In this document: piece by piece, positions 7,632 through 24,843 of the stretch
How the letters are laid out: every line of letters starts with the position of its first letter
Numbering within the stretch: position 1 is the first letter of the stretch
From: Oopsacas minuta
Lineage: Eukaryota > Animalia > Porifera
Length of the DNA stretch: 64,000 nucleotides
Assembly: GCA_024704765.1 (NCBI GenBank)
Contig: JAKMXF010000001.1
Location: 29,493-93,492 of the forward strand
Direction of reading: 5' to 3'
Notes under the pieces: model-generated
Seen by the model: only the letters and a program-made list of their open reading frames with translations
The model's database searches: none
What the model was told of the DNA's origin: nothing
Translations under genes and position numbers: made by a program

Positions 7632-8198
7632 TTACATACAACTACAACTAGACTTCTTCTTGCTTTTCTTTACAAGAATTTTGGTCTGATCTCTAATCTC
7701 AGTAATTAGCGTGGTGAACACTTCGTCTACGTTAATATTGTATTTAGCTGACGTCTCAATGTAAGATGCCTTTAATGCTCTCGCAAGTATCTCTCCCTCC
7801 CCCATCTGAACAACTCTGTGCTGTGATAGATCTGATTTATTAGCTACGATAACAACCGGCAATGACATGCTATCATCCATGCGTCTAGCTGTTCGTATAC
7901 ACTGATAAGTCTTCTTGACTCTAAGGAATGACTCTCTGCTGGTGATGTCATAGACAATAATGAAGCTATGTCCTTGTGTGTAATACATGGACCGAGTTAG
8001 ATTCTCTTCTCCCTTGCCGTCCGTATCAATAATGTCCAGTTTATACATGAAATGCTCGTACGGTACATTAGTACTGTACGTGTCCTCTATCGTGTGTATG
8101 TATGAGAGAGGGAACTCTTCTCCGATATATCTTTTCAAGAGAGCAGTTTTTCCAACTTCTCCTATTCCGAGTACAATCACACGATAACATGTAGACAT
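7632..8198 (-). CDS. Ras-family small GTPase, atypical, with CAAX box
   Basis: G1 GIGEVGKT, G2 YIHTIED, G3 DTDG, G4 NKSD, G5 ETSAK, then a polybasic tail and CSCM. Confidence 0.92.
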   Translation of the reverse strand: MSTCYRVIVLGIGEVGKTALLKRYIGEEFPLSYIHTIEDTYSTNVPYEHFMYKLDIIDTDGKGEENLTRSMYYTQGHSFIIVYDITSRESFLRVKKTYQCIRTARRMDDSMSLPVVIVANKSDLSQHRVVQMGEGEILARALKASYIETSAKYNINVDEVFTTLITEIRDQTKILVKKSKKKSSCSCM

Positions 8199-8689
8199 TG
8201 TTCAATTGTAGAGTTGGGCATTGTCCTCCTTATAAATTTATGATATTGAATGATATGATATTTGATCCTACTCATAAACATACTATAAATATTCAGAAAG
8301 AATGTATGGATTAATTAGAGATTACACTCTAATTCATTGAAATAATGCAAAAATATTAAAATTGGTTTTGAGGGTGGATTTGAGAGGTATGACTATACAA
8401 ATTAGATTATCATACCCTCTAAGTATGATCCGGAGTACCTTGGAGTCATGCAATTAATTAACTGAATTAGGCGTATGAAAATTGACAGGAGGAGCATCAG
8501 AAGCGTACTCCCAAATCCTATATATCTCTCTGCTTGTAGTTGTAGGAGTGTCTGAGTCAGGAGAAGAATTTAGCCCAACTAAATGTAATACACATTAACA
8601 ACTATATCTTATAATAATTTAATATACAATCTAACTTCTATGACATCCACTGAGGGGACTGGCCAAAAGTGGCCGTGAGAAATTTGAAG

Positions 8690-8821
8690 TTAATGACCGT
8701 ATATAGAGGTAGTTATAGAAATGCCGTTATAAACAGACTCAATTCGTGTGAGGGTCCAGAAATGGTGGCCGCTGCCTGCAGATATTGCTATAAAAGGTGG
8801 CGGTTAAGCTACTTTACTGTA
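8690..8821. mobile_element. Tigger/pogo-like MITE right-end relic
   Basis: Internal GACCGTATATAGAGG / GCCGTTATA motifs; ends ...CTTTACTG|TA (CAGTA-type TIR plus TA). Confidence 0.35.
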
Positions 8822-8877
8822 TTTAAATAGTACGATATAACAATTCAATACAAATGACAAAATATAGCAGTATTAAT

Positions 8878-10041
8878 TTATACGTACTCACATTCACTAG
8901 AAAGGTCTTCACATTTTCTGAATAGGGTGCATACGCCCAACGTATCCCAAATATACACAAACGTATTCTCATCTGCTACATACATTGTTCCAGGACAAAA
9001 GCATGATGATAAATAACCAAAATCGGCTATTTGTCCCTCTCCAGTGTAACTAACGATGAATTTCTTAGGGTAGAGATCTGAATCCAAGCTACAAAGAATC
9101 CTTCCTCCCCGTGTGATATCAACATACACTGGTGTTTTTGTGTTCAGTTTATTCAAATGCTGACATCTAATTGAAATCTTGTCTCCAGGGATGTTGCTGT
9201 CCCCAGCTAGTTTCCTAACAAATATCATTCCATCTTGGTAGTAGACTAGTAGTAGCTCAATCCCATGTATAAAATAGTCACCTCTGTACACGCCAGGTGA
9301 CAACAGCTGTGGTTCATCGGTATGTACTTTACACACAACTACCTTGGTTAAGTTAAGCTCACAGGTAGTATTATTATAGGATGAGTTGAGGTCTGAATAT
9401 CTGTCAATACTGTATACATCCCGTGAGCCGAGGTCTTTGAGTTTAGGATTGTTGATTTCACATACGAGATTCTTACAAGCAGACTTACTCAACCGGATAA
9501 TTTTGAGAGGGTCTACTCTCTCTCCCTCTTCAAATCTTCCTGAGCACGAAAATGTTACATTTCTCTTAGAAATTTTAAAAGAACTATCGTAGAGAGAGAA
9601 TTTCGCAATTTCGTGATACTCAAGTGGATTATTCATAAATTTAACATGTCTTAATCCTGGCATTTTTCCGATGAATTCTAATGGGTTAGTTGATGATTGA
9701 GCTATGCTTATTACTATGTTGTAAGGATCAAGATGGAGAACCCATAAACCTCGTAATTGGCATAGAAAATAGTAATATTTGTGGTACAGAGATTTGTTTG
9801 AGAGATCAGGAAGGAGATGAAATACACTTACATCGCGATACCGATATGATATAATGTATTTCCAAATAATATCAGTGTTACAGAGTACATAGAGTTCTTT
9901 ACAACAAACTGATAAAGCAGATAAAGATCTTGGAGTACATACGATAACAATTTTAATGAGAATATCTCGAGGAAGCTCCAACAACAGTAGAGGTTTGTGA
10001 GCAGGATTTTGCTTAACTAATTCAGAATTTGACTCTGCCAT
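8878..10041 (-). CDS. FBXO31: F-box protein FBXO31-like, single exon
   Basis: F-box (LLELPRDILIKI...CKELYVLCNTDIIWK). The C-terminal PGVYRGDYFIHGIE...KLAGDSNIP...GEGQIADFGY...FVYIW matches the FBXO31 substrate-binding domain. Confidence 0.82.
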   Translation of the reverse strand: MAESNSELVKQNPAHKPLLLLELPRDILIKIVIVCTPRSLSALSVCCKELYVLCNTDIIWKYIISYRYRDVSVFHLLPDLSNKSLYHKYYYFLCQLRGLWVLHLDPYNIVISIAQSSTNPLEFIGKMPGLRHVKFMNNPLEYHEIAKFSLYDSSFKISKRNVTFSCSGRFEEGERVDPLKIIRLSKSACKNLVCEINNPKLKDLGSRDVYSIDRYSDLNSSYNNTTCELNLTKVVVCKVHTDEPQLLSPGVYRGDYFIHGIELLLVYYQDGMIFVRKLAGDSNIPGDKISIRCQHLNKLNTKTPVYVDITRGGRILCSLDSDLYPKKFIVSYTGEGQIADFGYLSSCFCPGTMYVADENTFVYIWDTLGVCTLFRKCEDLSSECEYV

Positions 10042-10187
10042 TTACAAATTCCATTCTACTAAAGAAATACGTATATATGAAATATAAGGAGGTTTATAAC
10101 CTAGTAATGAGCTACAGTAGAACTCTCTTAGTACGTTCCGGGCATGGGCAGTTCCGGCCTAAGCTTTACTCCGGTTAGTATGTAGTA

Positions 10188-10921
10188 CAGACAATTCGAT
10201 ACGGACATATCGCTATGCAGAGTTCCATAAGGACAGTTCGCTACTGGATAATTCGCTACACGGGAGACGAATACATGAATTAGACAGCTGACCCAGTCAG
10301 GCTTGTCCATAGGTCCTACATAGTCAGGCCTTGTATAAATATGTGAGGTCAAGTCAGGTCAGGTAGGTCAGGTCTCAAGATTAATCAGATCAATTAACAA
10401 TCAATTAACAATCAATTAACTACAATTAATCAACATAGGAACGGGGAAACCATACACCAAGGGACGGACACACTGCCAGTATATATTTTGACAAAAGCCT
10501 ATTACATTGAAGATATATCATACTCGAAACTAGTTAACCGTATTAGGGAAGTAATTCAATTCTATTTACGAGTTAATTAGTGACAGGATTAGCAAGGTAA
10601 GATTATTAGAGTCCCTGAAGCCTGAAAATGAGCTGTAAATGACGTAAAAATGACCTGCAAGTTGCTCAAATAATTTAGTCAGGTTTGGTCAGGTCATAAC
10701 CAAAAATATTCACGGGGAACGTTCTTCACTGTGACACCGGTATGCTAGTATAGAGTATACCCGGATATATTCCAGGAGGGGATAATCTGGGTTTGCAATT
10801 TGGTCTAGCTGGGCTAAATTTATCAGGCAATTATGGTCCGGGTTGATTTGGGTCTTATCAACAAATTTCTGATTTTTCGTAAGTGTCCGTGTAGCGAAGT
10901 GCCGTATCCCGAGTTCTACTG
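10188..10921. mobile_element. Non-autonomous Tc1/mariner (Tigger/pogo-like) element, about 730 bp
   Basis: TA|CAG...CTG|TA ends with imperfect inverted termini. TTCGCTACACGG (~10253) is the reverse complement of CCGTGTAGCGAA (~10887). Internal (TCAGG)n and AATCAATTAAC tandem copies. Confidence 0.5.
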
Positions 10922-11400
10922 TACATATATGGCAATTATAACAAATACTCTGTTTGATACGTAGGTTATTCCATAACCCATATGATTATAAAATGCAACG
11001 TTGTGGAATATTGTAGGGTATATTCCAGTAAATTGACTAACTATACAAATTTTGTAAATTACAGTATTAATAAGTATCCACAAACCATAAATATACATTA
11101 TGGTAAAAACATTATTAAACTAGGTTTGTTATTTGCAAAGTGCAGACCGAAAGATTAACATTTTTAGTTGATTATTCAATCTGTCGAGCACATATCTCCC
11201 TGAAAATAGTATTGGATAGATTATGTAGAGATTACAGAGGAAATAATACATTTTAAAAGTACAGCAATTCTTTTGATTTCCTAGGTTCCAAATTGTATCT
11301 AGTCAACTTCTGATAGCGTAAGTTTGGGGAAATAAGTAAATTAGTCTGACTTATATTTGGGATTCATAATTTAGGATTATTAGTAAATTTATCTCTGTTG

Positions 11401-11404
<4 letters not shown>

Positions 11405-11443
<39 letters not shown>
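11405..11443. repeat. (TTA)n microsatellite
   Basis: About 12 TTA units. Confidence 0.95.
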
Positions 11444-11791
11444 GTCTCTACCTCGGAATAGGATGGAAGACTTCCTGTGATTATAATCTCTCACACAAAT
11501 TGACAATTTGGAATTATAAACACAATATAACCAGAGAGGAGGATAGACCCATTAGATAGCAGACTAATTACTCTATTTTCAATATTTACTACCCAGCACT
11601 GATATATGTATTGTATCATTTGTATGTATTCAGTGTTTCTCATGGCTAACTAGACAGAACAGTGCAGATAGTCTACACACATAAATGTATATAAACCAAA
11701 TTAGATACACACTTGTAATAATATAATTCTTGATTTACTTCTTCATTTCTAACTACAAATTTGTAAATATTGTTATTCCGATATTAATAAA

Positions 11792-14700
11792 ATGGGACAG
11801 CAAATATTTCTCCTAACTGGACTTCTTTTGCTACAATTATTATTCTACAGAAACACAAACGGATTAGAACAATCAGGTGAGAGTTTAAAATCCAATTTTA
11901 TTTATACGCGTATAAGACATAAATAATAATATTACATAAATTTGTAATTAAATATAGTAATTTCTTTACAGATATCCATATTTGCAATATATAATTTGAA
12001 GAGGTCCAATGTGCCTATTTCTTATAGTTAGAAAGTGGATAAGGTAGTATCATAAGTGTAGGATTCTATTCAGCATGAGGCAGATAGTATCTGTACATCT
12101 GCATATTGCCATAATAGAATCAAATGACATCCATAAACTTATCTCAGAACCTGCAAACACCACACTTGTCTGAATGTCAGAGCTTTCTCATTTGCTGTTT
12201 GGCATTTTCATTTCCTAATTTAGATTGACGTGTTAAGTTGAGAAATCGATCAACAAATAGAGAAATTCACCATGTAGCCAGTCTATTGTTCGCCCCCGGT
12301 ATCCTTAAGTTGATCATAGATAAACATTTTCTAGACAGAATACATTTACAGGAGAATATACTTTATAAGAAAGTATAATTAACAATCCAAAACCAAATTG
12401 AGCTATCAAGTACTGTATTCTACAAATAATAAATGCAAGTTAGTTTATTCAATACAAATATTCTCTTCAGAATTAACTATTGAGTACGTATTAATGCGAA
12501 AATGTAAAATTCAGATTTCTTTCGTATTAAGAACTAGGTAATTAGGGATCTATGCTTGAGTATAATATTCATGGACAGGGTCGAAACAAAATATTCAACC
12601 ATATGTGTTTGGTACATATTTTAAGTTCAAATTGCCAAAATGCTATCTATGTTGAACCTGAATTCACATACTACGAGTGACAACACGCCAAACTTCAAGA
12701 ATGTCATTTGATTATTAGGGAGCAGATTACGAATAACTAATAAAATACAGTATTCAGGTGGAAAGGATAAATTCATATTGAGTTCTATTTTGAAAACAAA
12801 GCCAAACATTGTTTGTCATTGAGACCAACAACTTAAATCTGATAATAAAGATATGCCATGTGATTACTGGATACGATAAACAACACTTGTACACTGGTGT
12901 GGTAATTACTGTACATACTACATAGGTTTTGTGGAAAATTGAACTTAATGAAAAGCTTAAATGGAGTTAGGACGTGTATGTACAATTTTAATTACGCTTA
13001 AGCAATCAATATTAAAGTGGTATTTGACATGTTTAGTTTAATCTTGATTCTACATAGAAGATATAAATAAGTGAATTTATCGAATAAATATAAGTATAAA
13101 TCTATAGAATTTCATCAGTTCGAGAATACTTTACGAGAAGTTCGTAATTCTTCTCAACTAACTGAACCGCTTCTTCTACAGTATCAAAGTATTCAACATA
13201 TTTCAGCTGGCGTCGATCGGAAGAACCCTTCATTAGCTCCCAAGAGGTCTCTAGCACAACCTGCCAAGGATCCCTACACGCGATTATAGCTCTAGGAAAT
13301 CCTGGGACAGAATATAGAGCATCTACTGTTGTCATCCCCAATCCTACTAAGAGCTCTGCGAGAGTACCCACTCCACCTGGCATTGCTATTAAGATGGATG
13401 AATCCTCCACCAATTTATCCGTCCTTTGGTTGAGACCATGAGTTACATACCTCTTTGACATACTCTTGTTTCCTTTAATATTTCGGAAGAATAGAGTTGG
13501 TGATAGTATTCCTTCTGACATGTACTCGCCACTGCATTTCTTTTCTCCTATAATTGCGCCAGAATTAGCAGCTTCCATTATCCCAACATAGGCTCCTGTA
13601 ATCACTTTAAATCCCTTAGAAGCAATTGACAATGCTATCTCGTGAGCTATCTTATAAGCATGTACATCCGGTTTGGTGTCTCTACCCCCGAATATAGCTA
13701 CTCGTTTAGGAGGAGTCCTTACAGCATATCTCATGTCTGTTAGACGTAGTATATCCAGAAAGCGACTCTCCTCATATACACTGAGAGATCCTATCTTGTA
13801 AGCATTGTGTATGAGCTGACTAGCTTCATTGAGATTTATAGATAATGTTCTCATAATGTCTGAGAGAGGTTCTGTGTCAATAGATTCTCTACTCAAGCAG
13901 AAACAGATCCCTCTTCCAAAGAGCAAATGTAATATATTACTAACTACTTCTAACTCATTCTGTTTGACTGATAATGTGAGTTTGTAATGAGATGGAAGTT
14001 CATTGAAAATGTCTTCCAATTCCGCCTGACTAACTGTAGATAAATCTTGTAATAAGATTCTGTTAGTTGGGAGAATAGGAAAATCATTTGTAGACAGTTT
14101 TACCAACTGTTCAGCTCTAATCACTATACATGATATTTGAGCACCACTTCCTTGTAACTCCTCAATAATTTCATTGGAATGTTGTATAGTTTCAAAATCT
14201 ACACAAAACCCTGCGAATAGGTCACGCCAGAGCTTAGAGATAGATAAGTTTAATTTCAAATTGAGTGAATTTGGGTATTTACAAACGAATCTACATCCTG
14301 TAGTGAGTGAGCTCATTTTCTGAGAACATATTTGACGTATTTTGCTAAACGTTCTATCCAACTCCCCTTCTGACGTCAGGAGACTAAGATCTTTGAGTAG
14401 GAATTCAGTATACAATAGTTTGTGATAAAGGACATTCCTTTAGGTATTCTTGTAACCAAGTTGAGAATGCTTTGTCACTCTGGACGAATGCGGGTGAGAT
14501 GTATAACTCTAATTTTGGAGCAGTCCACAGATAGAAGTTTACTCTATCTTCTATTTTAATGGGTTTGATAGCCATTTGTTGAATACGAAACTTGGTTAAT
14601 TTCGTAGAGCTAATGTATGATTGTTAGTTACAAACTTACAATACGCAAAATACATGTAGCTGAAGTTGTGCTGTAATTCGTATTAGAACTATACAATGCT

Positions 14701-17700
14701 GTCAGCGAGTGGGATGTAGTGGTGTGTTAGGTTAATTTACAACATTCTAGACATAATGATGGTGTTACAGATAGTAAATAATGGTCTAAACAGCAATTAT
14801 GAATAATTTATGATCACCTTTCTGGGTGAAGAAAAGCTAATTTCTATTTATTTCAAGTCCTTATGATGGAATTATGGGTCAGTTAATTATTCATTAAATA
14901 TTTTGAGGTGAAATGCAACATCCCTATGCAATATATCAATGTTTTATTCTCTTGCTCAATTACATGTTACAATTTCAAATCGCCATTTCACAGCCAATAA
15001 TTGCACCATTTCAGATAGGTTACAATGATGGATAAGAAACGAACGTTATCTCAGCTGTTACACTAGAAACGTTTTTACCAAATAGCTTAATTAGTTCATA
15101 TTAATATGAGTGTTAAGAATTTATTAAAATATGAGATTAGCTTACAGTGATTAAGTGTTAATTAAGTTGAGTTGGGTATTAATAAGAATAATTATACAAC
15201 AATTATAGTATGAGTATATTCATTTTTAGATCCACAAATTACTTTATATTATTCTGATACGAGACACACTTACAGAGGACAGTCTGCCGCAAACTATCTG
15301 GAAATTCCAGTAGCTACAATAACCATCCGTCTCACTTGTGAGGGATCTGGTGTGAGATGGGTTACCCCTAGCTCTGAATCTGGTAACATCAATGATAACC
15401 AATGGGGAACACTCACCATCAATTTGCTAACAGTAGGAGAAACTGGACTGTACAAATGTTACGGAGCTGAAGGAACATCTTCAGTGTACATCCAAGCAAT
15501 GGGTATGTATTGGTAGATATTAATTGTATGAATAAATATTAGTAAATTATTGCATAAATGATTTAGGTCTGGGAATGTATACTATACGAAGTGATAGAAA
15601 TACTCCAGAGAGACTTTATCCTGGAAGAAACTACTTCATTGAAGATACACAAGATGTTAATTACGAATTTTTCTGTCTTATGAGCAACCCTTATTCCTCA
15701 AATGTGCCAAGTTGGACTTATCCTAAATACGTAATAGGAACAGTTCATGAAGATAGTTACGTCATAGAATCTGATGTAATACAAGCAATAACATCACTCA
15801 GGGTTATAGAGGATAATTGGAATATTCTACTAAGCGGGAGGTATACCTGTGTGGGAGAGGATATAGATGGAGTAGTCATGAATGTTAGCATCAATATATG
15901 GAGTCACGGTAAGAGTAAAGTACTACGTATGTATATTGCAATATGTAATACAGATAGATGTTTTAGACTTTGGAATTGTGTATATTATTTTGGGCTAGGT
16001 ATTTAAAATTGGTACAAAAGTCTTGAAATGTAATTTGATAAAATGTACTAGTATTATCTAAATATTATCTGTATAGCTACTCCAATCCAAAGAACAGCAA
16101 TAACATCTGCACCCATTACACTCACATATCCTGACAATGATATAACAGATAAGATGGTAGCAGACACTACAACAGTTGCTAGCACACAAACAGAGACTAA
16201 ACAACCAACTTCTACTCCAACTAACACTGAGATAGTTATAGAAGAAATAACTTCAACTACAACTGATTATGGTAAGGATGAATTGATAATTTTATAGAAA
16301 TTAATCCTATATTAGATGCAGTGAAATATAAGAGTAATTACTTCTTGTATAGGCTATAGAAATTAATATGTATATCGATGTGTTGAATTAATTTCAACTT
16401 GAATCAGACAAAACAAGACTTATGGTTATATTGCACTAGCACCTACACTAATGCGCACACAAAAGTTAAAAATGTGAACTATCATTGTTATAGCTCGAAT
16501 AGCAAGTCATAACATGGCTGGTATAATCTATATTATTAAATCTCAAAATGTTGTTTGTCTGTTTGTTTGTCCGTTGTCAAGGAAAGGATTTACGGTATGC
16601 AATTTTGAAATTGTCGCATAACTATGTATTATCGTGCTTATCAAGGAAGTGAATAGAGTTTAATAAAACTTCACTAAATATATCCAACATGCTGAATCCG
16701 ATTTTCACACTTTTGGATTATCTTGGGAAATCGATCAACAAACAAAGAAATTCCCCATGTAGCCTGTGTATTGTTCGTGCTCGGTATCCTTAATCATATG
16801 TAAATTTATTGTTGTTTTATGAATATAAAGTAAAAAATTAGCAAATCTCCAAATTTACTTAGACATTTGCTCTCAAAGGGTACAAAGGAGATTTATCTTA
16901 CAAAATAATTTAATAATACATATGCCATATACGTATATTTGTGGATTACATTGTTCTAAATATATCTATATTATAAAACTCGTAGGCCGTCAATTGGAGG
17001 ATAATGGATACCTCGAGGCGGAATGTGCCGACTTCATCGCGAAGCAACGAGCCAAAGGCTCGTTAATGTATGAAATAATAACTAGCAATAATTATAGTAT
17101 GACATAATCTAAGAAGGGCAAATATGATTGAATTGTACAATACTTGTAATATAACTTGGCATAACAGTAGTTATATAAAATTAATAATAAGGAAAAATGA
17201 TGGATAAAGTGAAAGAGATTCTGAATCTATATAATAAAAGTATCTTCTTCCCTGAGAATTTTTGGTAAGGTCCGTAGTTTTTAGACAGAGAATCTTCGAG
17301 ATTAAGATTTCAGAGACCCGTGACAGTTTGAGATAATGAAATATTTGTGAGCATACATCTAATAATGATGTATCGTATTTAGTCATCCAGCAGGTGCAAT
17401 ATGTGTAAACGAATCGTTATTTTATGGATATAATTACCATATATGACTTTGGGAAGATAGAGATGCTATGAATAATACATTACATAAACTTATTGTATAT
17501 AATCTAAATGTGTACTGTAATCATAGCCCACTTTATAGTCTCTAGTATTTGAATTTATTTCAATTTTTAGAAATCACCACTAGTCAACCTGGCAACTTTC
17601 AGAAAGAAGATATTATGAGTAAGCTAGTAGCTAGCATATAGAAACTAATATACTCTATTACTGTATATATTTCCATTATATTATTAATAATACATTTTTA

Positions 17701-18036
17701 GTTAAAGCTGGCTTTGCACTAGCCCTGCTAGTAGCCGTACTTGGCTGGGTATTCTCTATGACGATTGTATGCTGTCTGTGGTGCTATATCAAGAAGAGAA
17801 GAGGATTGAAACGAGTTTCCTATAAAACTAGTGACAAATCTCTATCTTATGAAGAGGCTAATGGGAATTCAATTGAGAACCACTTAAATCCTCCAAGCAA
17901 AAAATTCTCATTTAACGGGTACTATCCGTGTACAATCAGAAATTTTGAGAAGGAACCTAGTCCCATAGGAAGCAACAGATTCTTACGTACCTCTACTCCT
18001 ACTTATAGAGTCCAATCTCAGGAAATGTTGATTTAA
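11792..18036 (+). CDS. Type I membrane Ig-superfamily receptor (signal peptide, 2 Ig domains, Thr-rich stalk, TM, cytoplasmic tail), multi-exon
   Basis: Manually assembled exons with phase-1 GT-AG junctions: 11792-11876 (MGQQIFLLTGLLLLQLLF...), 15229-15502 (RLTCEG...VRW...GLYKC), 15567-15908 (FFCL...SW...GRYTC), 16077-16271 (Thr-rich), 17571-17618, 17702-18036 (AGFALALLVAVLGWVFSMTIVCCLWCYI-KKRR). Possible 18-nt microexon at 16316-16333. Confidence 0.75.
12242..12308 (+). repeat. 67-bp dispersed repeat, copy A
   Basis: About 8 mismatches versus 16727-16793. Confidence 0.85.
13102..14575 (-). CDS. Degenerate adenosine-deaminase-like barrel fused to a LOG-family (SLOG) nucleotide phosphoribohydrolase; frame break at ~14405-14410
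   Basis: C-terminal domain RVAIFGG...VITGAYVGIMEAANSGA...QRT...IAMPGGVGTLAEL is LOG. An upstream 56-aa ORF (ATG 14575 to TGA 14405) overlaps the long ORF in another frame. The N-terminal part resembles the ADA strand/helix order (by-eye alignment). Confidence 0.75.
16727..16793 (+). repeat. 67-bp dispersed repeat, copy B
   Basis: Matches 12242-12308 (GAAATCGATCAACAAA...CGGTATCCTTAA). Confidence 0.85.
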
Positions 18037-18595
18037 TTAATCACACAAACTTCAAAACACATCTCTTACCATTCTTCAATAGAGAAAATTCCCGGTTATT
18101 ATTCTTATTGTATAATAATCGGTCAATTCAATGGAAGTGACTGGACTATTGTATTTGTAATAAATAGAATTTATGATTTTAATAAAAGATAATAATTGAG
18201 TTAGTCTATCTCTGGGCTTATTAGGGGTTTAATTAGTTTGCTATATAGAAAATTGTAAGGGTAATGGATTTGCATGATTAGATACTAGCAAAACAACAAT
18301 AGAAGAATCTATCTTTACTAAAATATTTTCGGAAAATTGTTTACACGGTATGCTCTAATTATTATGTTCCGTCGGGGCGTCTTATAGGATAGGAAAACCC
18401 CCTCTACCCGCTAGGGGTGCTTAACCTAGAACAGCGCCTGAATTAGAACGAATACGTCAATAGGATATACGCCCATAATACTTAGATGAAAGAGAAATCT
18501 AGGTTATTGGTATCATACCGATTACTATGTTCGGATAATATTCTAAACGAAAATAGAAATTTACTTTATTACTTCAATCAAATATTTCTGCTAAC

Positions 18596-19639
18596 ATGGA
18601 AACAGAAAATCTAATAAGCAATGGATTGCTAGAGCGATGTAGAGAGTATATGGGAGATTATTGGACTCTGAACAAACCCAATATATCTGTATCAGTTGTT
18701 ACAGGTGGATTAACAAATTCACTATTTCTACTCAAAATAGAATCTAATGATATAGGAAACATTCCAAACAGCCCAATATGTTGCTTGCTGAGAGTATTTG
18801 CTAATATCTGGTCACAAGAACAGGTAGCTACAAATAATGTCATAAGCACTGTCCTAGCGGAGAGAGGGTTCGGTCCAAAGATATATGGAGTCCTCCCAGG
18901 CATGGAAGGAAGATTAGAAGAGTTCTACTTTTGTCGACAACTCCATACATCTGAAATGATACCTAATTTTGATACTATTGCAGAGATTACTGGAAAGTTC
19001 AACAGACAAACATTACCTCTGCCTAAGAATGGAAATTTCCTCACTAACTCAATGCAGGGATTTCTTGAGAAGATTAATTGTACTCCAATCAAGATAGAAG
19101 CGAATAAACACAATATAGAGCAATTAAGGAATGAAGTGAATTGGAAGGAGGAAATACAGTGGATGGGTGAGTACTTACGTTCAATTGGTTCTCCTCTCCT
19201 CTTATGTCATAATGACATCAATGAGAGTAATTTACTTCTGCTAACTGACGGACAACTGAAGCTAATTGATTTTGAATTTGTGAGCTATAATTACAGGGGA
19301 TTTGAATTAGCTCAGCTCTTTTACGAATGTTCTATAACCATGACATACCCTGACTACCCATATTTTAAACACTCCCCCGGTGATTATCCAAGTTACGAAG
19401 CGAGGAGGGAATTTGTGGCCAAATACTTAGCAGTATACCAGCCAGGTAATATTCCCTGTGAAGAAGAGATACACTCAGTAGTTCTAGAAGTTGAGAAGAT
19501 GAAGATAGCAGTGGATTTATATTGGGTTCTATGGGCTATTGCAATGGCATTCACTGACGATAGATTCGGATATCCTGAGTATGCTCAGTTGAGGATTGAT
19601 CTATATCGCTTGGAGAAAGCTAAGCTACCAATAACCTGA
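18596..19639 (+). CDS. Choline/ethanolamine kinase (copy 1)
   Basis: TGGLTN ATP loop, Brenner motif CHNDINESN, choline-kinase motif LIDFEFVSYNYRGFELAQLF. Confidence 0.92.
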   Translation: METENLISNGLLERCREYMGDYWTLNKPNISVSVVTGGLTNSLFLLKIESNDIGNIPNSPICCLLRVFANIWSQEQVATNNVISTVLAERGFGPKIYGVLPGMEGRLEEFYFCRQLHTSEMIPNFDTIAEITGKFNRQTLPLPKNGNFLTNSMQGFLEKINCTPIKIEANKHNIEQLRNEVNWKEEIQWMGEYLRSIGSPLLLCHNDINESNLLLLTDGQLKLIDFEFVSYNYRGFELAQLFYECSITMTYPDYPYFKHSPGDYPSYEARREFVAKYLAVYQPGNIPCEEEIHSVVLEVEKMKIAVDLYWVLWAIAMAFTDDRFGYPEYAQLRIDLYRLEKAKLPIT

Positions 19640-20403
19640 TGAGTAATTTAGCATCAATTTGATTACAGGATATTATGGACAATTGTCTCTAAATATGAGC
19701 ATGATTATTCACCTGAATCTCATTTAGGATGGACTATAGCATTTATGTATCATAATTTAAGTCTACATAGTATTAGGAGAGGGCGGTACAGACCAATCGT
19801 ATATACTTATTAGGATATAATGTTACCTCGTGCATAGTGCATAGCTCCAGTGATTCGTGCTATCATTATAAGGTCATTCAGTTAGGTGGTCGGTCATTAA
19901 CATGACACGAGTAAGAAATAGACAAATAGAAAAGCTAGATAAACTACTCTTTAATTGTGAAACAATTGAAATCAGCAGTACATATAAAAGTGCTAGTAAT
20001 CAGTTAACTATCAATGTGTCCCTCATATCAGTAGAGTATACACATCTCAAGTACTGGTTGATATATGCATTAAAGATCTAGAAATCTAGATTAGTGTAAA
20101 AGCCAGTACGAGTAATGCATTGATTGGTAGTGACACATTGATAGTTATGTGATAATTAGCACTTCTATACTGTTAGATTCAAGTGATTCATTATTAAGGA
20201 CTAAATATCAATTAATGAGACAATATGTTGTGTCATGTCTACCTACAATAGTAGATCTGTATTAATTGGAGCACATTGACACTCCTGGTAGGATTCTCAG
20301 CACCATATCTAACTTGTTGTATGACATATAACATTTTACCAGATGTAGCTCAGCTGGTATAGGATAACTAGACTTTATGGCAACATTAGTATATACTCTA
20401 TAC

Positions 20404-20480
20404 CAGGGGTGTTCCAACTTTTAAATGTACGAGCCACTTGAATAAATAATTAGGCTCCGCCTTACGGGCCACAAATCATA
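20404..20480 (+). mobile_element. hAT-like solo left terminus
   Basis: CAGGGGTGTTCCAACTTTT is a Charlie-type TIR; no partner end was found. Confidence 0.4.
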
Positions 20481-20787
20481 GATCGCTTCTGGCTTTAGTT
20501 TAATCAATTTCCAAGCTATACTATTTGACTTGATATTGTATTAACAATGGATTCTACTTGTAAATTCAGGTTATTGACTTAAATTATATTCTTTTAAAAT
20601 TTAAATGGATTCGAATCATTTGATGTCTCTTTGTGACTCAGCTTGTTTCTAGCAAGTGGACAATAGAACTGTTGTATGAGGATTCAACTACTTCTATTAT
20701 AACAACCATGGATACTTCACAACCATGAGGGTTTAACTAACTTCTATTTATTGCTTAAGCTAACCTGAAGCACTAAGGCCTAAGCTG

Positions 20788-20825
20788 TCGCGCAGCGACC
20801 TAGCAAGCGAAGCGCGATAGTTAGT
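20788..20825 (+). mobile_element. Helitron-like 3' terminal hairpin (copy 2)
   Basis: TCGCGC-18nt-GCGCGA stem followed by TAGTTAGT. Confidence 0.45.
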
Positions 20826-21024
20826 AATTACATGTATAAACTCACTCTTTCACACCCACTAGATTTAAGATTATCAGGAATAATGTTTTTGTATGTTCTA
20901 TAATATTTGGCACACACCTAACTGCCATAATTTGATTTATTTTTGTAAATAATGCAAATTATTCATTCCCGCTACCTCAATACCATCAGTAACACAATAA
21001 TTATAGCACAGTTAACATTGCTTA

Positions 21025-21768
21025 TCATTTAACAGGTTGTAAATCGAAGAACAAGCTAGGGAAGTAGTATCTTGTTTGAGGAGCTTGTTGGTCTACCCAT
21101 ACCATCCCCTCCTTAATCAGATGCTCCATAACGTGGCTAGCTCTCTCTGTAGTCCAGTTAAGGGGCGGGGCAGTAAGAGTACTAATGGTCGTGTAGCCTG
21201 TAGCCTCAGCTTGCTGCATAGTGGTAGTATGATCCATGTTAAGCTCACCAGGAACTGATTGCACTAGTTTCTTACCACCTAGAGGAATTATCTTAAACCC
21301 ATTCCCTAGAATTGATAACTTCTTAATTGCTCTTGTTAAATCGTCTAAACTGACATCTTGCTGCTGAGTCTTGCTCCTGGAGGCAATCACTCGCTTCCTC
21401 AGATCTTCAAGTGTTATCAAACCTCCGTTTAAGTCCCTGGTAGCTAAACATATCTCTATTATCTGTATCCCTACCTCGAAATAGAAGTCCCCCACTCCTA
21501 GAAGCGAGGCCCAGAAACCCTTACTAGAGGCCAGAGGATCAACACCGATACGAGCACACATTTGTTGAAACTGAGCTCTGAATTCTGGATTCTTTTTAAT
21601 CTCATTTTTGTGTTTTGCTGCAAAAGTTTCCAAATAAGATCGGAAGGACTCAATCTGAGTACTGACGTGTGACATCTCTACATCAGCTATCTCTGCTCCT
21701 TTCTCTCCATACTTTGCTTTCTCAAGCTTTTCTTTATTGATCGCTCCCAGTCCTCTTCTCCGAGCCAT
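21025..21768 (-). CDS. SNF8: ESCRT-II subunit VPS22/EAP30
   Basis: [51 protein letters not shown]...NGGLI...[11 protein letters not shown] is colinear with SNF8; single exon. Confidence 0.97.
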
Positions 21769-22268
21769 TCTAACAAACTAGCTAATAATAATTTTATTAT
21801 ACAATCAAACCTGATAATAAGTGTAAGTGTGTAAGGGATTTTATATTCAGTTGGATACAGTTCGAGAGTTCCCCCGGGTACGAGCCCATGGAGCTGCTAA
21901 TTGTATACTGCATATAGAATATATGCAATATACAATAGGACTCATAAGAACTATGACATTATAGCTAATACCAACATCGTGAACATCAATCAACCTCGCA
22001 CGGATATCTTTTCTAATTGTTTGCCTTCAATATAACGGGAGTTAACTGTGGGGCCAACTGATGCCCTCTAAAGTGTCCAATATGATACAAAAACTATCAC
22101 AAGCTATGTATAACTATGTTATCATTGTCGTATTTTACATCATGTCCACTATGTATTACCCTACACTTTCACAATTCAGTGAATTTCAGTCAAATAGCTT
22201 TCAATAATTTCCACTATTCAGTCAGATTGTATAACATTAGCGAGTAAAATGCACAATTGCTGAAATAA

Positions 22269-23336
22269 TTAGCTCTCTAATAACTTAGCCTTTTCAGATT
22301 TATACATGGACAGTCTAGTTTGTGCAAATTCTAGATAACAAAACGTAGCACGAGGTGACTCTATCATAGACAGAGCCCAGATGTATGCCAACATATCTGT
22401 TAGTATTCTACAACTCTCTATCTCTTCTACTATGCTCTCTATCTCAGCAATTGAATGAGTGATATTAGGTTGTAGTGCATGTAGATACATTCTAACAAAC
22501 TTACATCTCATGTGGAAAGATGGATAAGCTGCTTCTGAGTAGGAGTAGTATGGAGGTTCTTTAACTGAGTAGTCAAATGCTGATTCCTTGAAAAGCTGAG
22601 CTATGTCAGCTCCTCTGTAATAGTAACTACTGAATTCAAAATCTATACACTTTATAGTTAACTCATCTCTGTCTGTGAGTAATAGGAGGTTAGCTTGACT
22701 GTAATCATTATGACAGAACACTATAGGATAGTTGAGTTGTTTAAGATGTTGTTCTAACCAGTCTAACTCTTCCTCCCATTTCTTCTCACTCAACATTCCA
22801 TTCAACATACTCTGTCTCTTGGAATCAGATAGACAAACTTCCTCAGTCTTCTTCAACCATCTTCTCATACATTTGAACACGAAGCTTGCATCCTTAGGTA
22901 CTGGCATATCCTGTAGATGCATCTCTGCTATAATTCTGGTAGTGTGTGTGAGAACATTCTCTTGATACAACTCTAGATTAGTTAGAGTTCTACACTGATA
23001 GAAATGTTCTAGTCTTCCTTGTGAGTGAGACAGGACTCCGTACAGCTTAGGAGCTAGTCCTCTCTCAGAGAGGATAGCGTAGACAATATTCTGAGTGATT
23101 ATCTCTTCTTGTGACCAGATGTCAGAGAATAGTCTCAGAATGACAGTATCAGGAGTAGTAGCACTGGTAGAGGGTGTATGTTTCAGTTTTAGAATATACA
23201 GTTTATTAGTTTGTCCTTCTGTAATGGATTCTATATGGATTGGTGCTAGAGGTAGTGAGTACCAGTCTCCTCCCAGTAGTCTCCTACACATGAGTACTGT
23301 AGTGTCAGGAACTGGGATATCTACAGAAGTTGCCAT
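22269..23336 (-). CDS. Choline/ethanolamine kinase (copy 2)
   Basis: CHNDYSQAN and CIDFEFSSYYYRG motifs; ATG at 23336. Confidence 0.9.
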   Translation of the reverse strand: MATSVDIPVPDTTVLMCRRLLGGDWYSLPLAPIHIESITEGQTNKLYILKLKHTPSTSATTPDTVILRLFSDIWSQEEIITQNIVYAILSERGLAPKLYGVLSHSQGRLEHFYQCRTLTNLELYQENVLTHTTRIIAEMHLQDMPVPKDASFVFKCMRRWLKKTEEVCLSDSKRQSMLNGMLSEKKWEEELDWLEQHLKQLNYPIVFCHNDYSQANLLLLTDRDELTIKCIDFEFSSYYYRGADIAQLFKESAFDYSVKEPPYYSYSEAAYPSFHMRCKFVRMYLHALQPNITHSIAEIESIVEEIESCRILTDMLAYIWALSMIESPRATFCYLEFAQTRLSMYKSEKAKLLES

Positions 23337-24403
23337 CACACAAATACTTACTTGCTAATTTGATTAATAAATAATGTAAGGTCAAGGGTTGGTGGGCAAA
23401 TTAACTTAGCTTTACACAGTTACACCATGTTACATCACCAGATTTTACCATACGTATACGTATTTGCAATTTGCATTAATTAATGGAAGTGTGACAATAG
23501 TCACAAAACCATGCGATACACTCGAAATGGTCAGAGTCGAGTTTATTTACTAACAGAGTTTAGTATGCACTATCAGTACATCCAGTATCCATGCTTGCAT
23601 ATACTGGATGGCATATTATGAAATCATTCTAGTACAGATTTACCTTGGATTGATGTAAGAAATGCCCAAGGACATGTACTCGAATTATAATACCTCATAA
23701 TTTGACATAATTGATAATATAATTAGTAATTACCAATAAATTTCATTTTGTAGCAAAATGGTAGAGTCTAATAGCAGTAGTGTAGATATCCCAGTTCCTG
23801 ACACTACAGTACTCATGTGTAGGAGACTACTGGGAGGAGACTGGTACTCACTACCTCTAGCACCAATCCATATAGAATCCATTACAGAAGGACAAACTAA
23901 TAAACTGTATATTCTAAAACTGAAACATACACCCTCTACCAGTGCTACTACTCCTGATACTGTCATTCTGAGACTATTCTCTGACATCTGGTCACAAGAA
24001 GAGATAATCACTCAGAATATTGTCTACGCTATCCTCTCTGAGAGAGGACTAGCTCCTAAGCTGTACGGAGTCCTGTCTCACTCACAAGGAAGACTAGAAC
24101 ATTTCTATCAGTGTAGAACTCTAACTAATCTAGAGTTGTATCAAGAGAATGTTCTCACACACACTACCAGAATTATAGCAGAGATGCATCTACAGGATAT
24201 GCCAGTACCTAAGGATGCAAGCTTCGTGTTCAAATGTATGAGAAGATGGTTGAAGAAGACTGAGGAAGTTTGTCTATCTGATTCCAAGAGACAGAGTATG
24301 TTGAATGGAATGTTGAGTGAGAAGAAATGGGAGGAAGAGTTAGACTGGTTAGAACAACATCTTAAACAACTCAACTATCCTATAGTGTTCTGTCATAATG
24401 ATT
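22703..24403. repeat. 623-bp inverted repeat (22703-23325 / 23781-24403) with a 455-bp spacer
   Basis: Identical translation from VDIPVP to CHND. Boundaries give equal lengths; spot-checked nucleotide blocks match exactly. Confidence 0.92.
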
Positions 24404-24843
24404 TATACTCACAGAATATAATCAGACTACTAGACAAAGATGAGTTCAATATTCGTGTTATTGACTTTGATATGGCTTCATACAATTATAGAGGTTATGA
24501 ATTTGCACAGCTGTTCCATGACTTATTATTTGACTATTCGTGTACGGCGCATCCTGGCTTCAAGTACTTACCAGATCAGTACCCTTCTCTAGAGCAGAGA
24601 CAGAATATAGTCAGACTGTATTTACAGAGATTATATGACAGGGATACTACCAAGGAGGAAGTAGATCAGCTGGTGAATGAAATACAGCAGACAAGACTGT
24701 ATTCTTGTCTGTTCGTGTTTTTATGGGGCTTGAGAGCCTCAGTGGTTTATAACTATCCTTTCGATTCTTTATACTTTGCTAAGGTATATCTTTCAATGTA
24801 CAATACTGAGAAAGAAAGATTATCTAAACAAAAATTTGAATAA
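23758..24843 (+). CDS. Choline/ethanolamine kinase (copy 3)
   Basis: CHNDLYSQN and VIDFDMASYNYRGYEFAQLF motifs. Confidence 0.9.
   Translation: MVESNSSSVDIPVPDTTVLMCRRLLGGDWYSLPLAPIHIESITEGQTNKLYILKLKHTPSTSATTPDTVILRLFSDIWSQEEIITQNIVYAILSERGLAPKLYGVLSHSQGRLEHFYQCRTLTNLELYQENVLTHTTRIIAEMHLQDMPVPKDASFVFKCMRRWLKKTEEVCLSDSKRQSMLNGMLSEKKWEEELDWLEQHLKQLNYPIVFCHNDLYSQNIIRLLDKDEFNIRVIDFDMASYNYRGYEFAQLFHDLLFDYSCTAHPGFKYLPDQYPSLEQRQNIVRLYLQRLYDRDTTKEEVDQLVNEIQQTRLYSCLFVFLWGLRASVVYNYPFDSLYFAKVYLSMYNTEKERLSKQKFE

Follow-up and report, generated by a model that had tools for sequence, protein, structure and literature searches.

A 64,000-nucleotide stretch of the genome of the glass sponge Oopsacas minuta (contig JAKMXF010000001.1, positions 29,493 to 93,492; hereafter the window, numbered from its first letter) carries a single-exon gene on its minus strand that joins a barrel resembling the adenosine deaminase (ADA) family to a phosphoribohydrolase-like domain of the LOG family. 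On balance, we favor the view that its product is a cytosolic glass-sponge protein in which a non-catalytic, ADA-derived barrel serves as a ligand-binding, regulatory or assembly module on a LOG phosphoribohydrolase. An initial annotation had proposed a dead ADA-fold barrel fused to a LOG enzyme with its catalytic residues in place, and both the sequence profiles and the fold comparisons bear this out. It had also placed the gene correctly at 13102–14575. The features are as follows.

13102–14575, minus strand: whole gene, with the ATG at 14575 and the stop codon TAG at 13104–13102; orthologues are colinear with it
14575–14405, minus strand: open reading frame (ORF) A, 56 amino acids and a stop, TGA at 14407–14405
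14415–13102, minus strand: ORF B, 437 amino acids and a stop, in the next frame relative to ORF A
14426–14428, minus strand: frameshift site, a TTT run within TGTCCTTTATCAC with one surplus base, the frame being lost after Pro49
13833–14536, minus strand: zinc-less ADA-like (β/α)8 barrel, assigned from AlphaFold2 models, fold searches, hhalign and selection analysis
14495–14545, minus strand: N-terminal helix and β1 motif RVNFYLWTAPKLELYIS, corresponding to the ADA signature (F/L)xxxPKxELHxH with both His residues lost (Tyr, Ser)
within 13833–14536, minus strand: barrel strands PKLELYIS, YTEFLL, GCRFVCKY, FAGFCVDFE, AQISCIVIR, NRILLQD, YKLTLSV and GICFCLSR
13714–13832, minus strand: junction helices EASQLIHNAYKIG and SLSVYEESRFLDILRLTD, the best-conserved stretch of the N-terminal half, modeled at low confidence (predicted local distance difference test, pLDDT, below 50)
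13105–13713, minus strand: LOG-family (type-II-like) phosphoribohydrolase domain, assigned from Pfam, sequence and fold matches in the PDB, and motifs
13599–13564, minus strand: LOG loop motif TGAYVGIMEAAN, from the family alignment
13425–13423, minus strand: predicted catalytic Arg (of QRT), from its motif position
13380–13354, minus strand: PGGVGTLAE, with the predicted catalytic Glu at 13356–13354 and the preceding Ala at 13359–13357

The gene comprises about 490 codons when its frame break is read through. A surplus T in the CCTTTAT run (plus-strand positions 14426–14428) breaks the frame, and translation then meets the TGA at 14407–14405, so that the window itself does not encode the joined protein. 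Five full-length orthologues (P0002, P0003, P0005, P0006 and P0007; 479–501 amino acids) align colinearly and without gaps across the junction of ORF A and ORF B, and read straight through it as LQEYLEECPYHKLVYTEFL. When both frames are translated, the match to the family runs in frame 1 up to LKECP and in frame 2 from YHKLLYTEF, which sets the true junction at ECP|YHKLLYTEF. The initial annotation described the gene, which is real, without the frameshift of this haplotype, and its "IVYTEF" joint lies five codons beyond the point where the frames should meet. An intron at the break was considered and ruled out, as the orthologues are colinear and removal of a GT..AG segment fails to restore the frame. 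The N-terminus (MAIKPIKIEDR...) is not hydrophobic, and on this basis, judged by eye, our guess is that the protein is cytosolic. The genes of the window are mostly single-exon and its G+C content is 36%. Both features match the published glass-sponge genomes, with 36 ± 2.1% G+C in the 61-Mb O. minuta genome (PMC10280926) and with 9,872 of 16,340 transcripts of this species, and 12,409 of 19,578 in Aphrocallistes vastus, being single-exon (PMC10282587).

The N-terminal half is predicted to fold as a (β/α)8 barrel of the ADA type. AlphaFold2 (AF2), run on a shallow family alignment, produced eight strands alternating with helices (pLDDT 62.9; predicted template-modelling score, pTM, 0.62), with pLDDT values of 72–87 for residues 55–220 and below 50 at both ends. 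The adenosine/adenine deaminase family came first in each of the five libraries and with all three methods by which the fold was compared. In a Foldseek search of the PDB, members of this family were on top (3ou8, 5.7e-5, followed by 3rys and 7rtg). They also gave the best match (3.4e-5) and eight of the top 24 among the clusters of the AlphaFold database (AFDB), and 28 of the top 30 among the Swiss-Prot models of that database. Foldseek thus returned the barrel that the initial annotation had expected, with ADA-family proteins as the top matches. The top four rows of an ESM Atlas shape search were all PF00962 proteins, with template-modelling (TM) scores of 0.59–0.65 over 238–264 residues, as compared to about 0.50 over about 200 residues for other barrels. 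VIA, which is independent of Foldseek and covered 48,161 PDB chains, placed ADA-family structures at nine of the top 14 positions and with the longest aligned lengths; these were ADA2, COG1816, ADA1, ADAL, the plant N6-mAMP deaminase and a CRISPR-associated deaminase. Several of the AFDB cluster matches (499, 530, 589 and 593 amino acids, among others) are annotated adenine/adenosine deaminases with an extra 200–280 residues ahead of the barrel.

The sequence profiles pointed to the same family. Since a homologue search with E. coli Add yielded only enterobacterial sequences (at least 84% identity), unusable for a profile, the ADA profile was built from 12 sequences, namely E. coli add and eleven plasmid-borne add genes at 22–36% identity; hhalign controls with single sequences lacked the power to discriminate. 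With default parameters, the family profile scored 31.2 locally (P 1.7e-3) and 24.1 globally (P 1.4e-4) against the ADA profile. None of 150 column shuffles reached these scores (local 14.7 ± 2.5, maximum 25.1; global 3.7 ± 2.8, maximum 18.4), and the reversed profile gave 15.2 and 3.6, respectively. With relaxed gap extension, a single colinear alignment joined residues 14–284 to ADA residues 1–333 with a score of 44.9, above all 150 column shuffles (21.5 ± 5.2, maximum 40.4) and all 150 block shuffles (25.0 ± 4.9, maximum 43.8). This alignment sets FYLWTAPKVELYIS on the ADA motif PKxELHxH and places a deletion of about 50 residues after β1, which corresponds to the ADA lid. The control profiles remained at background, with scores of 13.5, 4.3 and 15.5 for PyrC (14 sequences of dihydroorotase, another amidohydrolase barrel) and 13.3 and 16.1 for LOG (nine sequences). 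From β2 to β8, the hhalign register coincides one-to-one with the AF2 strands. Every pair of elements that had been matched by eye in the initial annotation was reproduced by hhalign against the 12 bacterial ADA sequences (β1 PKxEL, β2 YTEF, β4 FAGFCxD, β6 NRILL, β8 CFxLSR and the C-terminal helix). The barrel therefore very probably descends from the PF00962 family.

The deaminase site appears to have been dismantled in this barrel. By alignment, the positions of E. coli Add are occupied in the family by Y/L/F (H12), S/A (H14), R/K/Q/N (H197), Q/N (E200) and Q/R/D (H221). As three His ligands are lost, an ADA-type zinc site is impossible, and zinc-dependent deamination is excluded on sequence grounds. 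The initial annotation had reported the loss of both the zinc-binding His residues and the Asp pair of β8; the former holds and extends to the catalytic Glu, whereas the latter is ambiguous. The default alignment pairs NTDD with LSR and variable residues, while the relaxed alignment pairs it with a conserved S-T-D-T and thus keeps the first Asp.

Both domains are under purifying selection, as judged from pairwise ratios of nonsynonymous to synonymous substitution (dN/dS) at unsaturated dS. The ratio is 0.14–0.34 for the barrel, which is less tightly constrained than the LOG half (0.07–0.12). The motifs PK.EL, E..L..D, DLF.G.C, F-Y-L-S-R and S.S.YE..F, which lie at the strand ends and in the junction helix, are invariant even in the distant family member P0010. 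In TIM barrels, the ligand face is formed by the C-terminal ends of the strands. Because the conserved residues cluster at these ends, we infer that the barrel retains a pocket.

The junction helix, SLSVYEESRFLDxLRL, directly precedes β1 of the LOG domain. The initial annotation had read it as the ADA C-terminal helix. The hhalign alignment agrees with this, but the helix may just as well correspond to α1, the additional N-terminal helix by which type-II LOGs build their hexamer (PMC5379747). A BLASTP alignment with the bacterial type-II LOG P0008 begins only at β1. The junction helices may thus be either the C-terminal helices of ADA or the type-II LOG α1 oligomerization helix.

The C-terminal domain was recognized more directly. 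The initial annotation had located LOG motifs in the last 200 or so residues, and these stand at the positions listed above, with Pfam scores above the cut-offs. PF03641 (Lysine_decarbox) matched ORF B with 34.6 bits and the LOG domain of P0002 with 48.4 bits (gathering cut-off 27), and PF18306 (LDcluster4) gave 39–40 bits (cut-off 26.3). The best PDB sequence matches were the bacterial type-II LOGs 5zi9 (1e-13), 5wq3, 9us2 and 1wek, with type-I LOGs and PpnN next, and Foldseek on the LOG domain returned the same ranking. In an alignment of the family with two bacterial LOGs (P0008 and P0009) and E. coli PpnN, the motif TGG..G.MEA, an Asn, the Arg and PG..GT..E including the Glu are invariant. 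The Arg lies 15 residues before the PGGxGTxxE motif in the window (QRTDKLVEDSSILIAMPGGVGTLAE), and the Arg and Glu are correctly spaced in every family member, including P0010. In CgLOGII, the corresponding Arg155 and Glu178 form the catalytic pair common to all LOG subgroups, and the PGGxGTxxE loop binds phosphate (Seo and Kim, PMC5379747). The catalytic machinery of the LOG domain thus appears intact.

The base pocket, on the other hand, is altered. In known LOGs, the adenine ring is bound by the residue that precedes the catalytic Glu, an Asp in type II and a Glu in type I (PMC5379747). Since this acidic residue is replaced in the sponge family, base recognition is probably unlike that of the textbook cytokinin/AMP LOGs. 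The combination of a GGY(V/F)GIMEA loop with a non-acidic residue before the Glu recurs in a few bacterial and metagenomic LOGs. One is P0009, which also has Ala before the catalytic Glu. Another is a 208-residue metagenomic LOG-like protein (contig L110, 2968–3594, plus strand), which has a GGYFGIMEA loop, RGS instead of PGG and, at its N-terminus, a Cys-rich segment resembling a zinc ribbon, and whose neighbors are small phage-like ORFs. In the window species, Ala stands before the Glu (13357–13359), where a related organism (organism B, described below) and most orthologues have Thr. The TGGY loop, otherwise invariant, has Ala for its second Gly in this species (13591–13593), and organism B appears to share this latter Ala, with no change at that codon among the differences listed.

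The fusion is rare and its distribution narrow. A search of 5.8 billion proteins recovered seven close clusters, five of which hold full-length proteins of 479–501 amino acids, and a profile search of 1.84 billion representative proteins recovered only the family and P0010, one distant member of the same architecture (515 amino acids, E 1.4e-15). The fusion amounts to about eight clusters in the 5.8 billion proteins, all apparently from glass sponges (Hexactinellida). A scan of JGI metagenomes found LOG-only relatives at 26–31% identity and no fusion, and a language-model atlas search with the N-terminal domain found nothing (scores 0.48–0.57). With the exception of the window's product, no member of the family is recorded in NCBI or UniRef. 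Clustered with P0002 at the 90% level is a EukProt entry, a Trinity transcript of Vazella pourtalesii of identical length that differs by one residue; the orthologue is therefore expressed. A full-text literature search returned no description of an ADA fusion with a LOG or SLOG domain, nor of a sponge or metazoan phosphoribohydrolase, and two glass-sponge genome papers (PMC10280926, PMC10282587) mention neither domain. The initial annotation likewise knew of no description of this fusion. The domain architecture and the pseudo-enzyme branch of the ADA fold appear to be new, and so far restricted to Hexactinellida.

The genomic surroundings are eukaryotic and animal-like, with three choline kinases, EAP30, a protein-only RNase P, an F-box/cyclin-D1-binding protein and a Ras-like GTPase; the closest atlas clusters of the neighboring CYP4 genes are from arthropods and chordates. 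The order EAP30, choline kinase, LOG fusion, F-box/cyclin-D1-binding protein, Ras-like GTPase (window 7632–24843) is kept in the Vazella contig of P0002 (L001) and partly kept in the contig of P0005 (L004). The window holds three choline/ethanolamine kinase paralogues (18596–19639, plus strand; 22269–23339, minus strand; 23758–24843, plus strand), as compared to one beside the gene in L001 and L004. Upstream of the fusion gene and divergently transcribed is a small ORF (15575–16006, plus strand) with no Pfam match. Its counterpart at the corresponding position of the Vazella contig (L001 5565–5912) is 81% identical over 113 amino acids, while the LOG fusion is only 68% identical. The ORF contains the sequence GRYTCVGED, which recalls an Ig-like domain, and as the similarity ends at SHGK, it may represent exon 1 of a longer gene.

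Logan contigs from four public runs were compared over 13000–14700, of which three (X1, X2 and X3) are from one sample and the fourth (X5) is from organism B, which is about 96% identical. The surplus base is present in the contigs of X1 and X3, which are short-read contigs with Nextera adaptor remnants. It is absent from X2, a single 3.5-kb contig at a depth of 194 (the gap being placed at 14427), and also from X5. Five linked single-nucleotide polymorphisms (SNPs) set X2 apart, and together they give back Glu46, the family consensus. The frame break is therefore a genuine allele, with an intact allele coexisting in the same sample, and the assembly copy is a frameshifted null allele. This allele looks recent, because changes at otherwise invariant positions are no more numerous in the window lineage (four, namely E46K, Y227C, G329A and A467V) than in the other species (zero to six).

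It is highly improbable that the gene is a decaying pseudogene in Oopsacas or that the break arose in the assembly or marks a programmed frameshift. The frameshift and the private E46K change of the reference haplotype could be taken as signs of decay, as could the 17 nonsynonymous to 18 synonymous changes among the differences listed between organisms A and B. Against decay stand the full-depth intact allele with its linked SNPs in a run of the same sample, the intact gene of organism B and the unexceptional number of changes at invariant sites. The independent occurrence of the surplus base in two sets of short-read contigs excludes an assembly error, and recoding is superfluous as all of the orthologues are in frame.

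Several observations weigh against the interpretation given at the outset. For the barrel, Pfam A_deaminase (PF00962) matched no family member even at E ≤ 10, the family profile matched nothing among all PDB sequences at E ≤ 10, and the hhalign probability against the ADA profile was only 16–26% at default parameters. The AF2 model is of low confidence at residues 1–32 and 225–290, which cover β1, β8 and the helices behind the longer alignment with ADA. The LOG domain is divergent by sequence, since its match to NCBIfam TIGR00730 is below the cut-off (46.2 as compared to 96.35 bits) and the position preceding the catalytic Glu has lost its acidic residue (Ala in the window, Thr in most orthologues and Leu in P0010). 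This replacement of the acidic adenine-binding residue argues against a textbook cytokinin/AMP LOG. RNA runs of the window's own organism were looked for and none was found. Enzymatic activity and ligand binding, as well as any regulatory coupling, are what we infer from sequences and models.

With these points in mind, it remains unlikely that the N-terminal domain is a TIM barrel unrelated to the deaminases or of untraceable origin, its likeness to ADA being convergent or generic and perhaps amplified by AlphaFold's memory of ADA structures. The missing Pfam match and the partial confidence of the model would be in keeping with such an origin. However, the ADA family ranked first across all libraries and methods, and the ADA profile scored about twice as high as the PyrC and LOG controls and above every shuffle. 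The one-to-one agreement between the hhalign register and the modeled strands, and the location of the ADA-typical N-terminal helix and PKxEL exactly at β1, further favor descent from the deaminases.

Given such descent, the conserved polar residues at the strand C-termini (the Glu of PKxEL, the Thr-Glu of YTEF, C-I-D-x-E, and S-R with S-T-D after β8) and the purifying selection on the barrel might instead reflect an enzyme with a new, metal-independent chemistry, the protein being bifunctional and catalyzing two steps of one nucleotide pathway. We consider this improbable, as the residues that stand in for all four His and for the proton-shuttle Glu of ADA are chemically diverse and differ among orthologues, which is atypical of a catalytic site. 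We give as little credence to the view that the LOG domain is itself a nucleotide sensor, with SLOG-type ligand binding, and that the whole protein is a non-enzymatic regulator. Its divergence from TIGR00730, the non-acidic base-binding residue, the Gly-to-Ala change in the GGY loop of the window species and the variation of PGG to PGS or PGT among orthologues would fit a sensor, but the invariance and spacing of the Arg and Glu in all members, P0010 included, and an ω of 0.07–0.12, typical of an enzyme core, speak for a hydrolase.

We therefore return to a LOG hydrolase bearing a non-catalytic barrel. The LOG domain would most likely cleave the N-glycosidic bond of a nucleoside 5'-monophosphate to yield the free base and ribose 5-phosphate, by means of the retained phosphate-binding loop and Arg/Glu pair and with an altered base pocket. 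The barrel, derived from an adenosine/adenine deaminase-type (PF00962-like) TIM barrel that has lost the lid of about 50 residues, the His zinc ligands and the catalytic Glu, would be unable to deaminate. Because it is under purifying selection with conserved residues at the C-terminal strand ends, it probably acts as an accessory module, which may mediate assembly or bind a purine-type ligand, be it the substrate, the product base or an effector, and thereby tune the activity of the LOG domain.

N6-methyl-AMP is a substrate of ADAL and of its plant counterpart MAPDA, and AMP with an N6 substituent is one of LOGs. As both families handle N6-modified AMP, the suggestion of the initial annotation that the fusion may act on such nucleotides is coherent, with the changed base-binding residue cautioning against an assumption of adenine specificity. 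Its further suggestions, nucleoside sensing by the barrel and the production of cytokinin-like bases, are likewise speculative. In its explicit form, the ADAL-like dead barrel would capture N6-methyl-AMP (m6AMP) or N6-isopentenyl-AMP (i6AMP) from RNA turnover and hand it to, or gate, the LOG domain, which would release an N6-modified adenine (a cytokinin-type base) and ribose 5-phosphate, a domain fusion having replaced the deaminase route with a glycosidase route. We regard this scenario as improbable.

To our knowledge, LOG enzymes are essentially unreported in animals. Here, a conserved, syntenic and transcribed LOG gene is found in an early-branching animal class, joined to a pseudo-enzyme from a deaminase family that elsewhere handles the same molecules (adenosine, adenine and N6-methyl-AMP). 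Bacteria, archaea, plants, fungi and amoebae are given as the known sources of LOG enzymes in PMC11228631. If the barrel does bind purines, a dead enzyme would have been recycled as a specificity or regulatory module for another enzyme acting on the same class of substrates, and this would hint at a pathway for purines or modified nucleotides that is specific to glass sponges. If it is only a scaffold, the fusion would be a lineage-specific curiosity.

By both sequence and fold, the known proteins closest to the C-terminal domain are the type-II LOGs, namely CgLOGII/Cg1261 (5wq3), S. coelicolor 5zi9, T. thermophilus TT1465 (1wek) and N. meningitidis YgdH (9us2). They share with the sponge domain the Rossmann-like fold, the GGxxGxMEA loop, the catalytic Arg and the Glu of PGGxGTxxE. 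A conserved helix is predicted directly before β1 in the sponge protein, where the type-II LOGs have α1, to which it may correspond. However, the sponge family has Ala, Thr or Leu instead of Asp before the catalytic Glu, and GGY(V/F)G instead of GGGPG in the loop, and where the N-terminal region of the type-II LOGs is short and disordered, the sponge protein has a barrel of about 250 residues.

The best functional analogy for a LOG domain with an accessory domain is E. coli PpnN (YgdH), a (p)ppGpp-regulated nucleotide 5'-monophosphate nucleosidase in which a LOG core is embedded in a larger protein and regulated allosterically by extra domains. The accessory domains of PpnN are DUF4478 and PpnN_C, neither of which was detected by Pfam in the sponge protein, which has a TIM barrel instead. 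Alarmone control of this kind is not known from animals, and the likeness would be one of logic.

With the ADA family (PF00962: ADA, adenine deaminase and ADAL/MAPDA), the sponge barrel shares the (β/α)8 fold, the N-terminal helix with the PKxEL of β1 and a colinear strand register, and its structural matches include two enzymes that act on N6-modified AMP, ADAL and plant MAPDA. It differs from this family in having no Pfam match, in lacking the lid of about 50 residues after β1 and in being about 100 residues shorter. The HxH motif, the β5 His, the β6 His and the catalytic Glu of ADA are all replaced in the sponge barrel.

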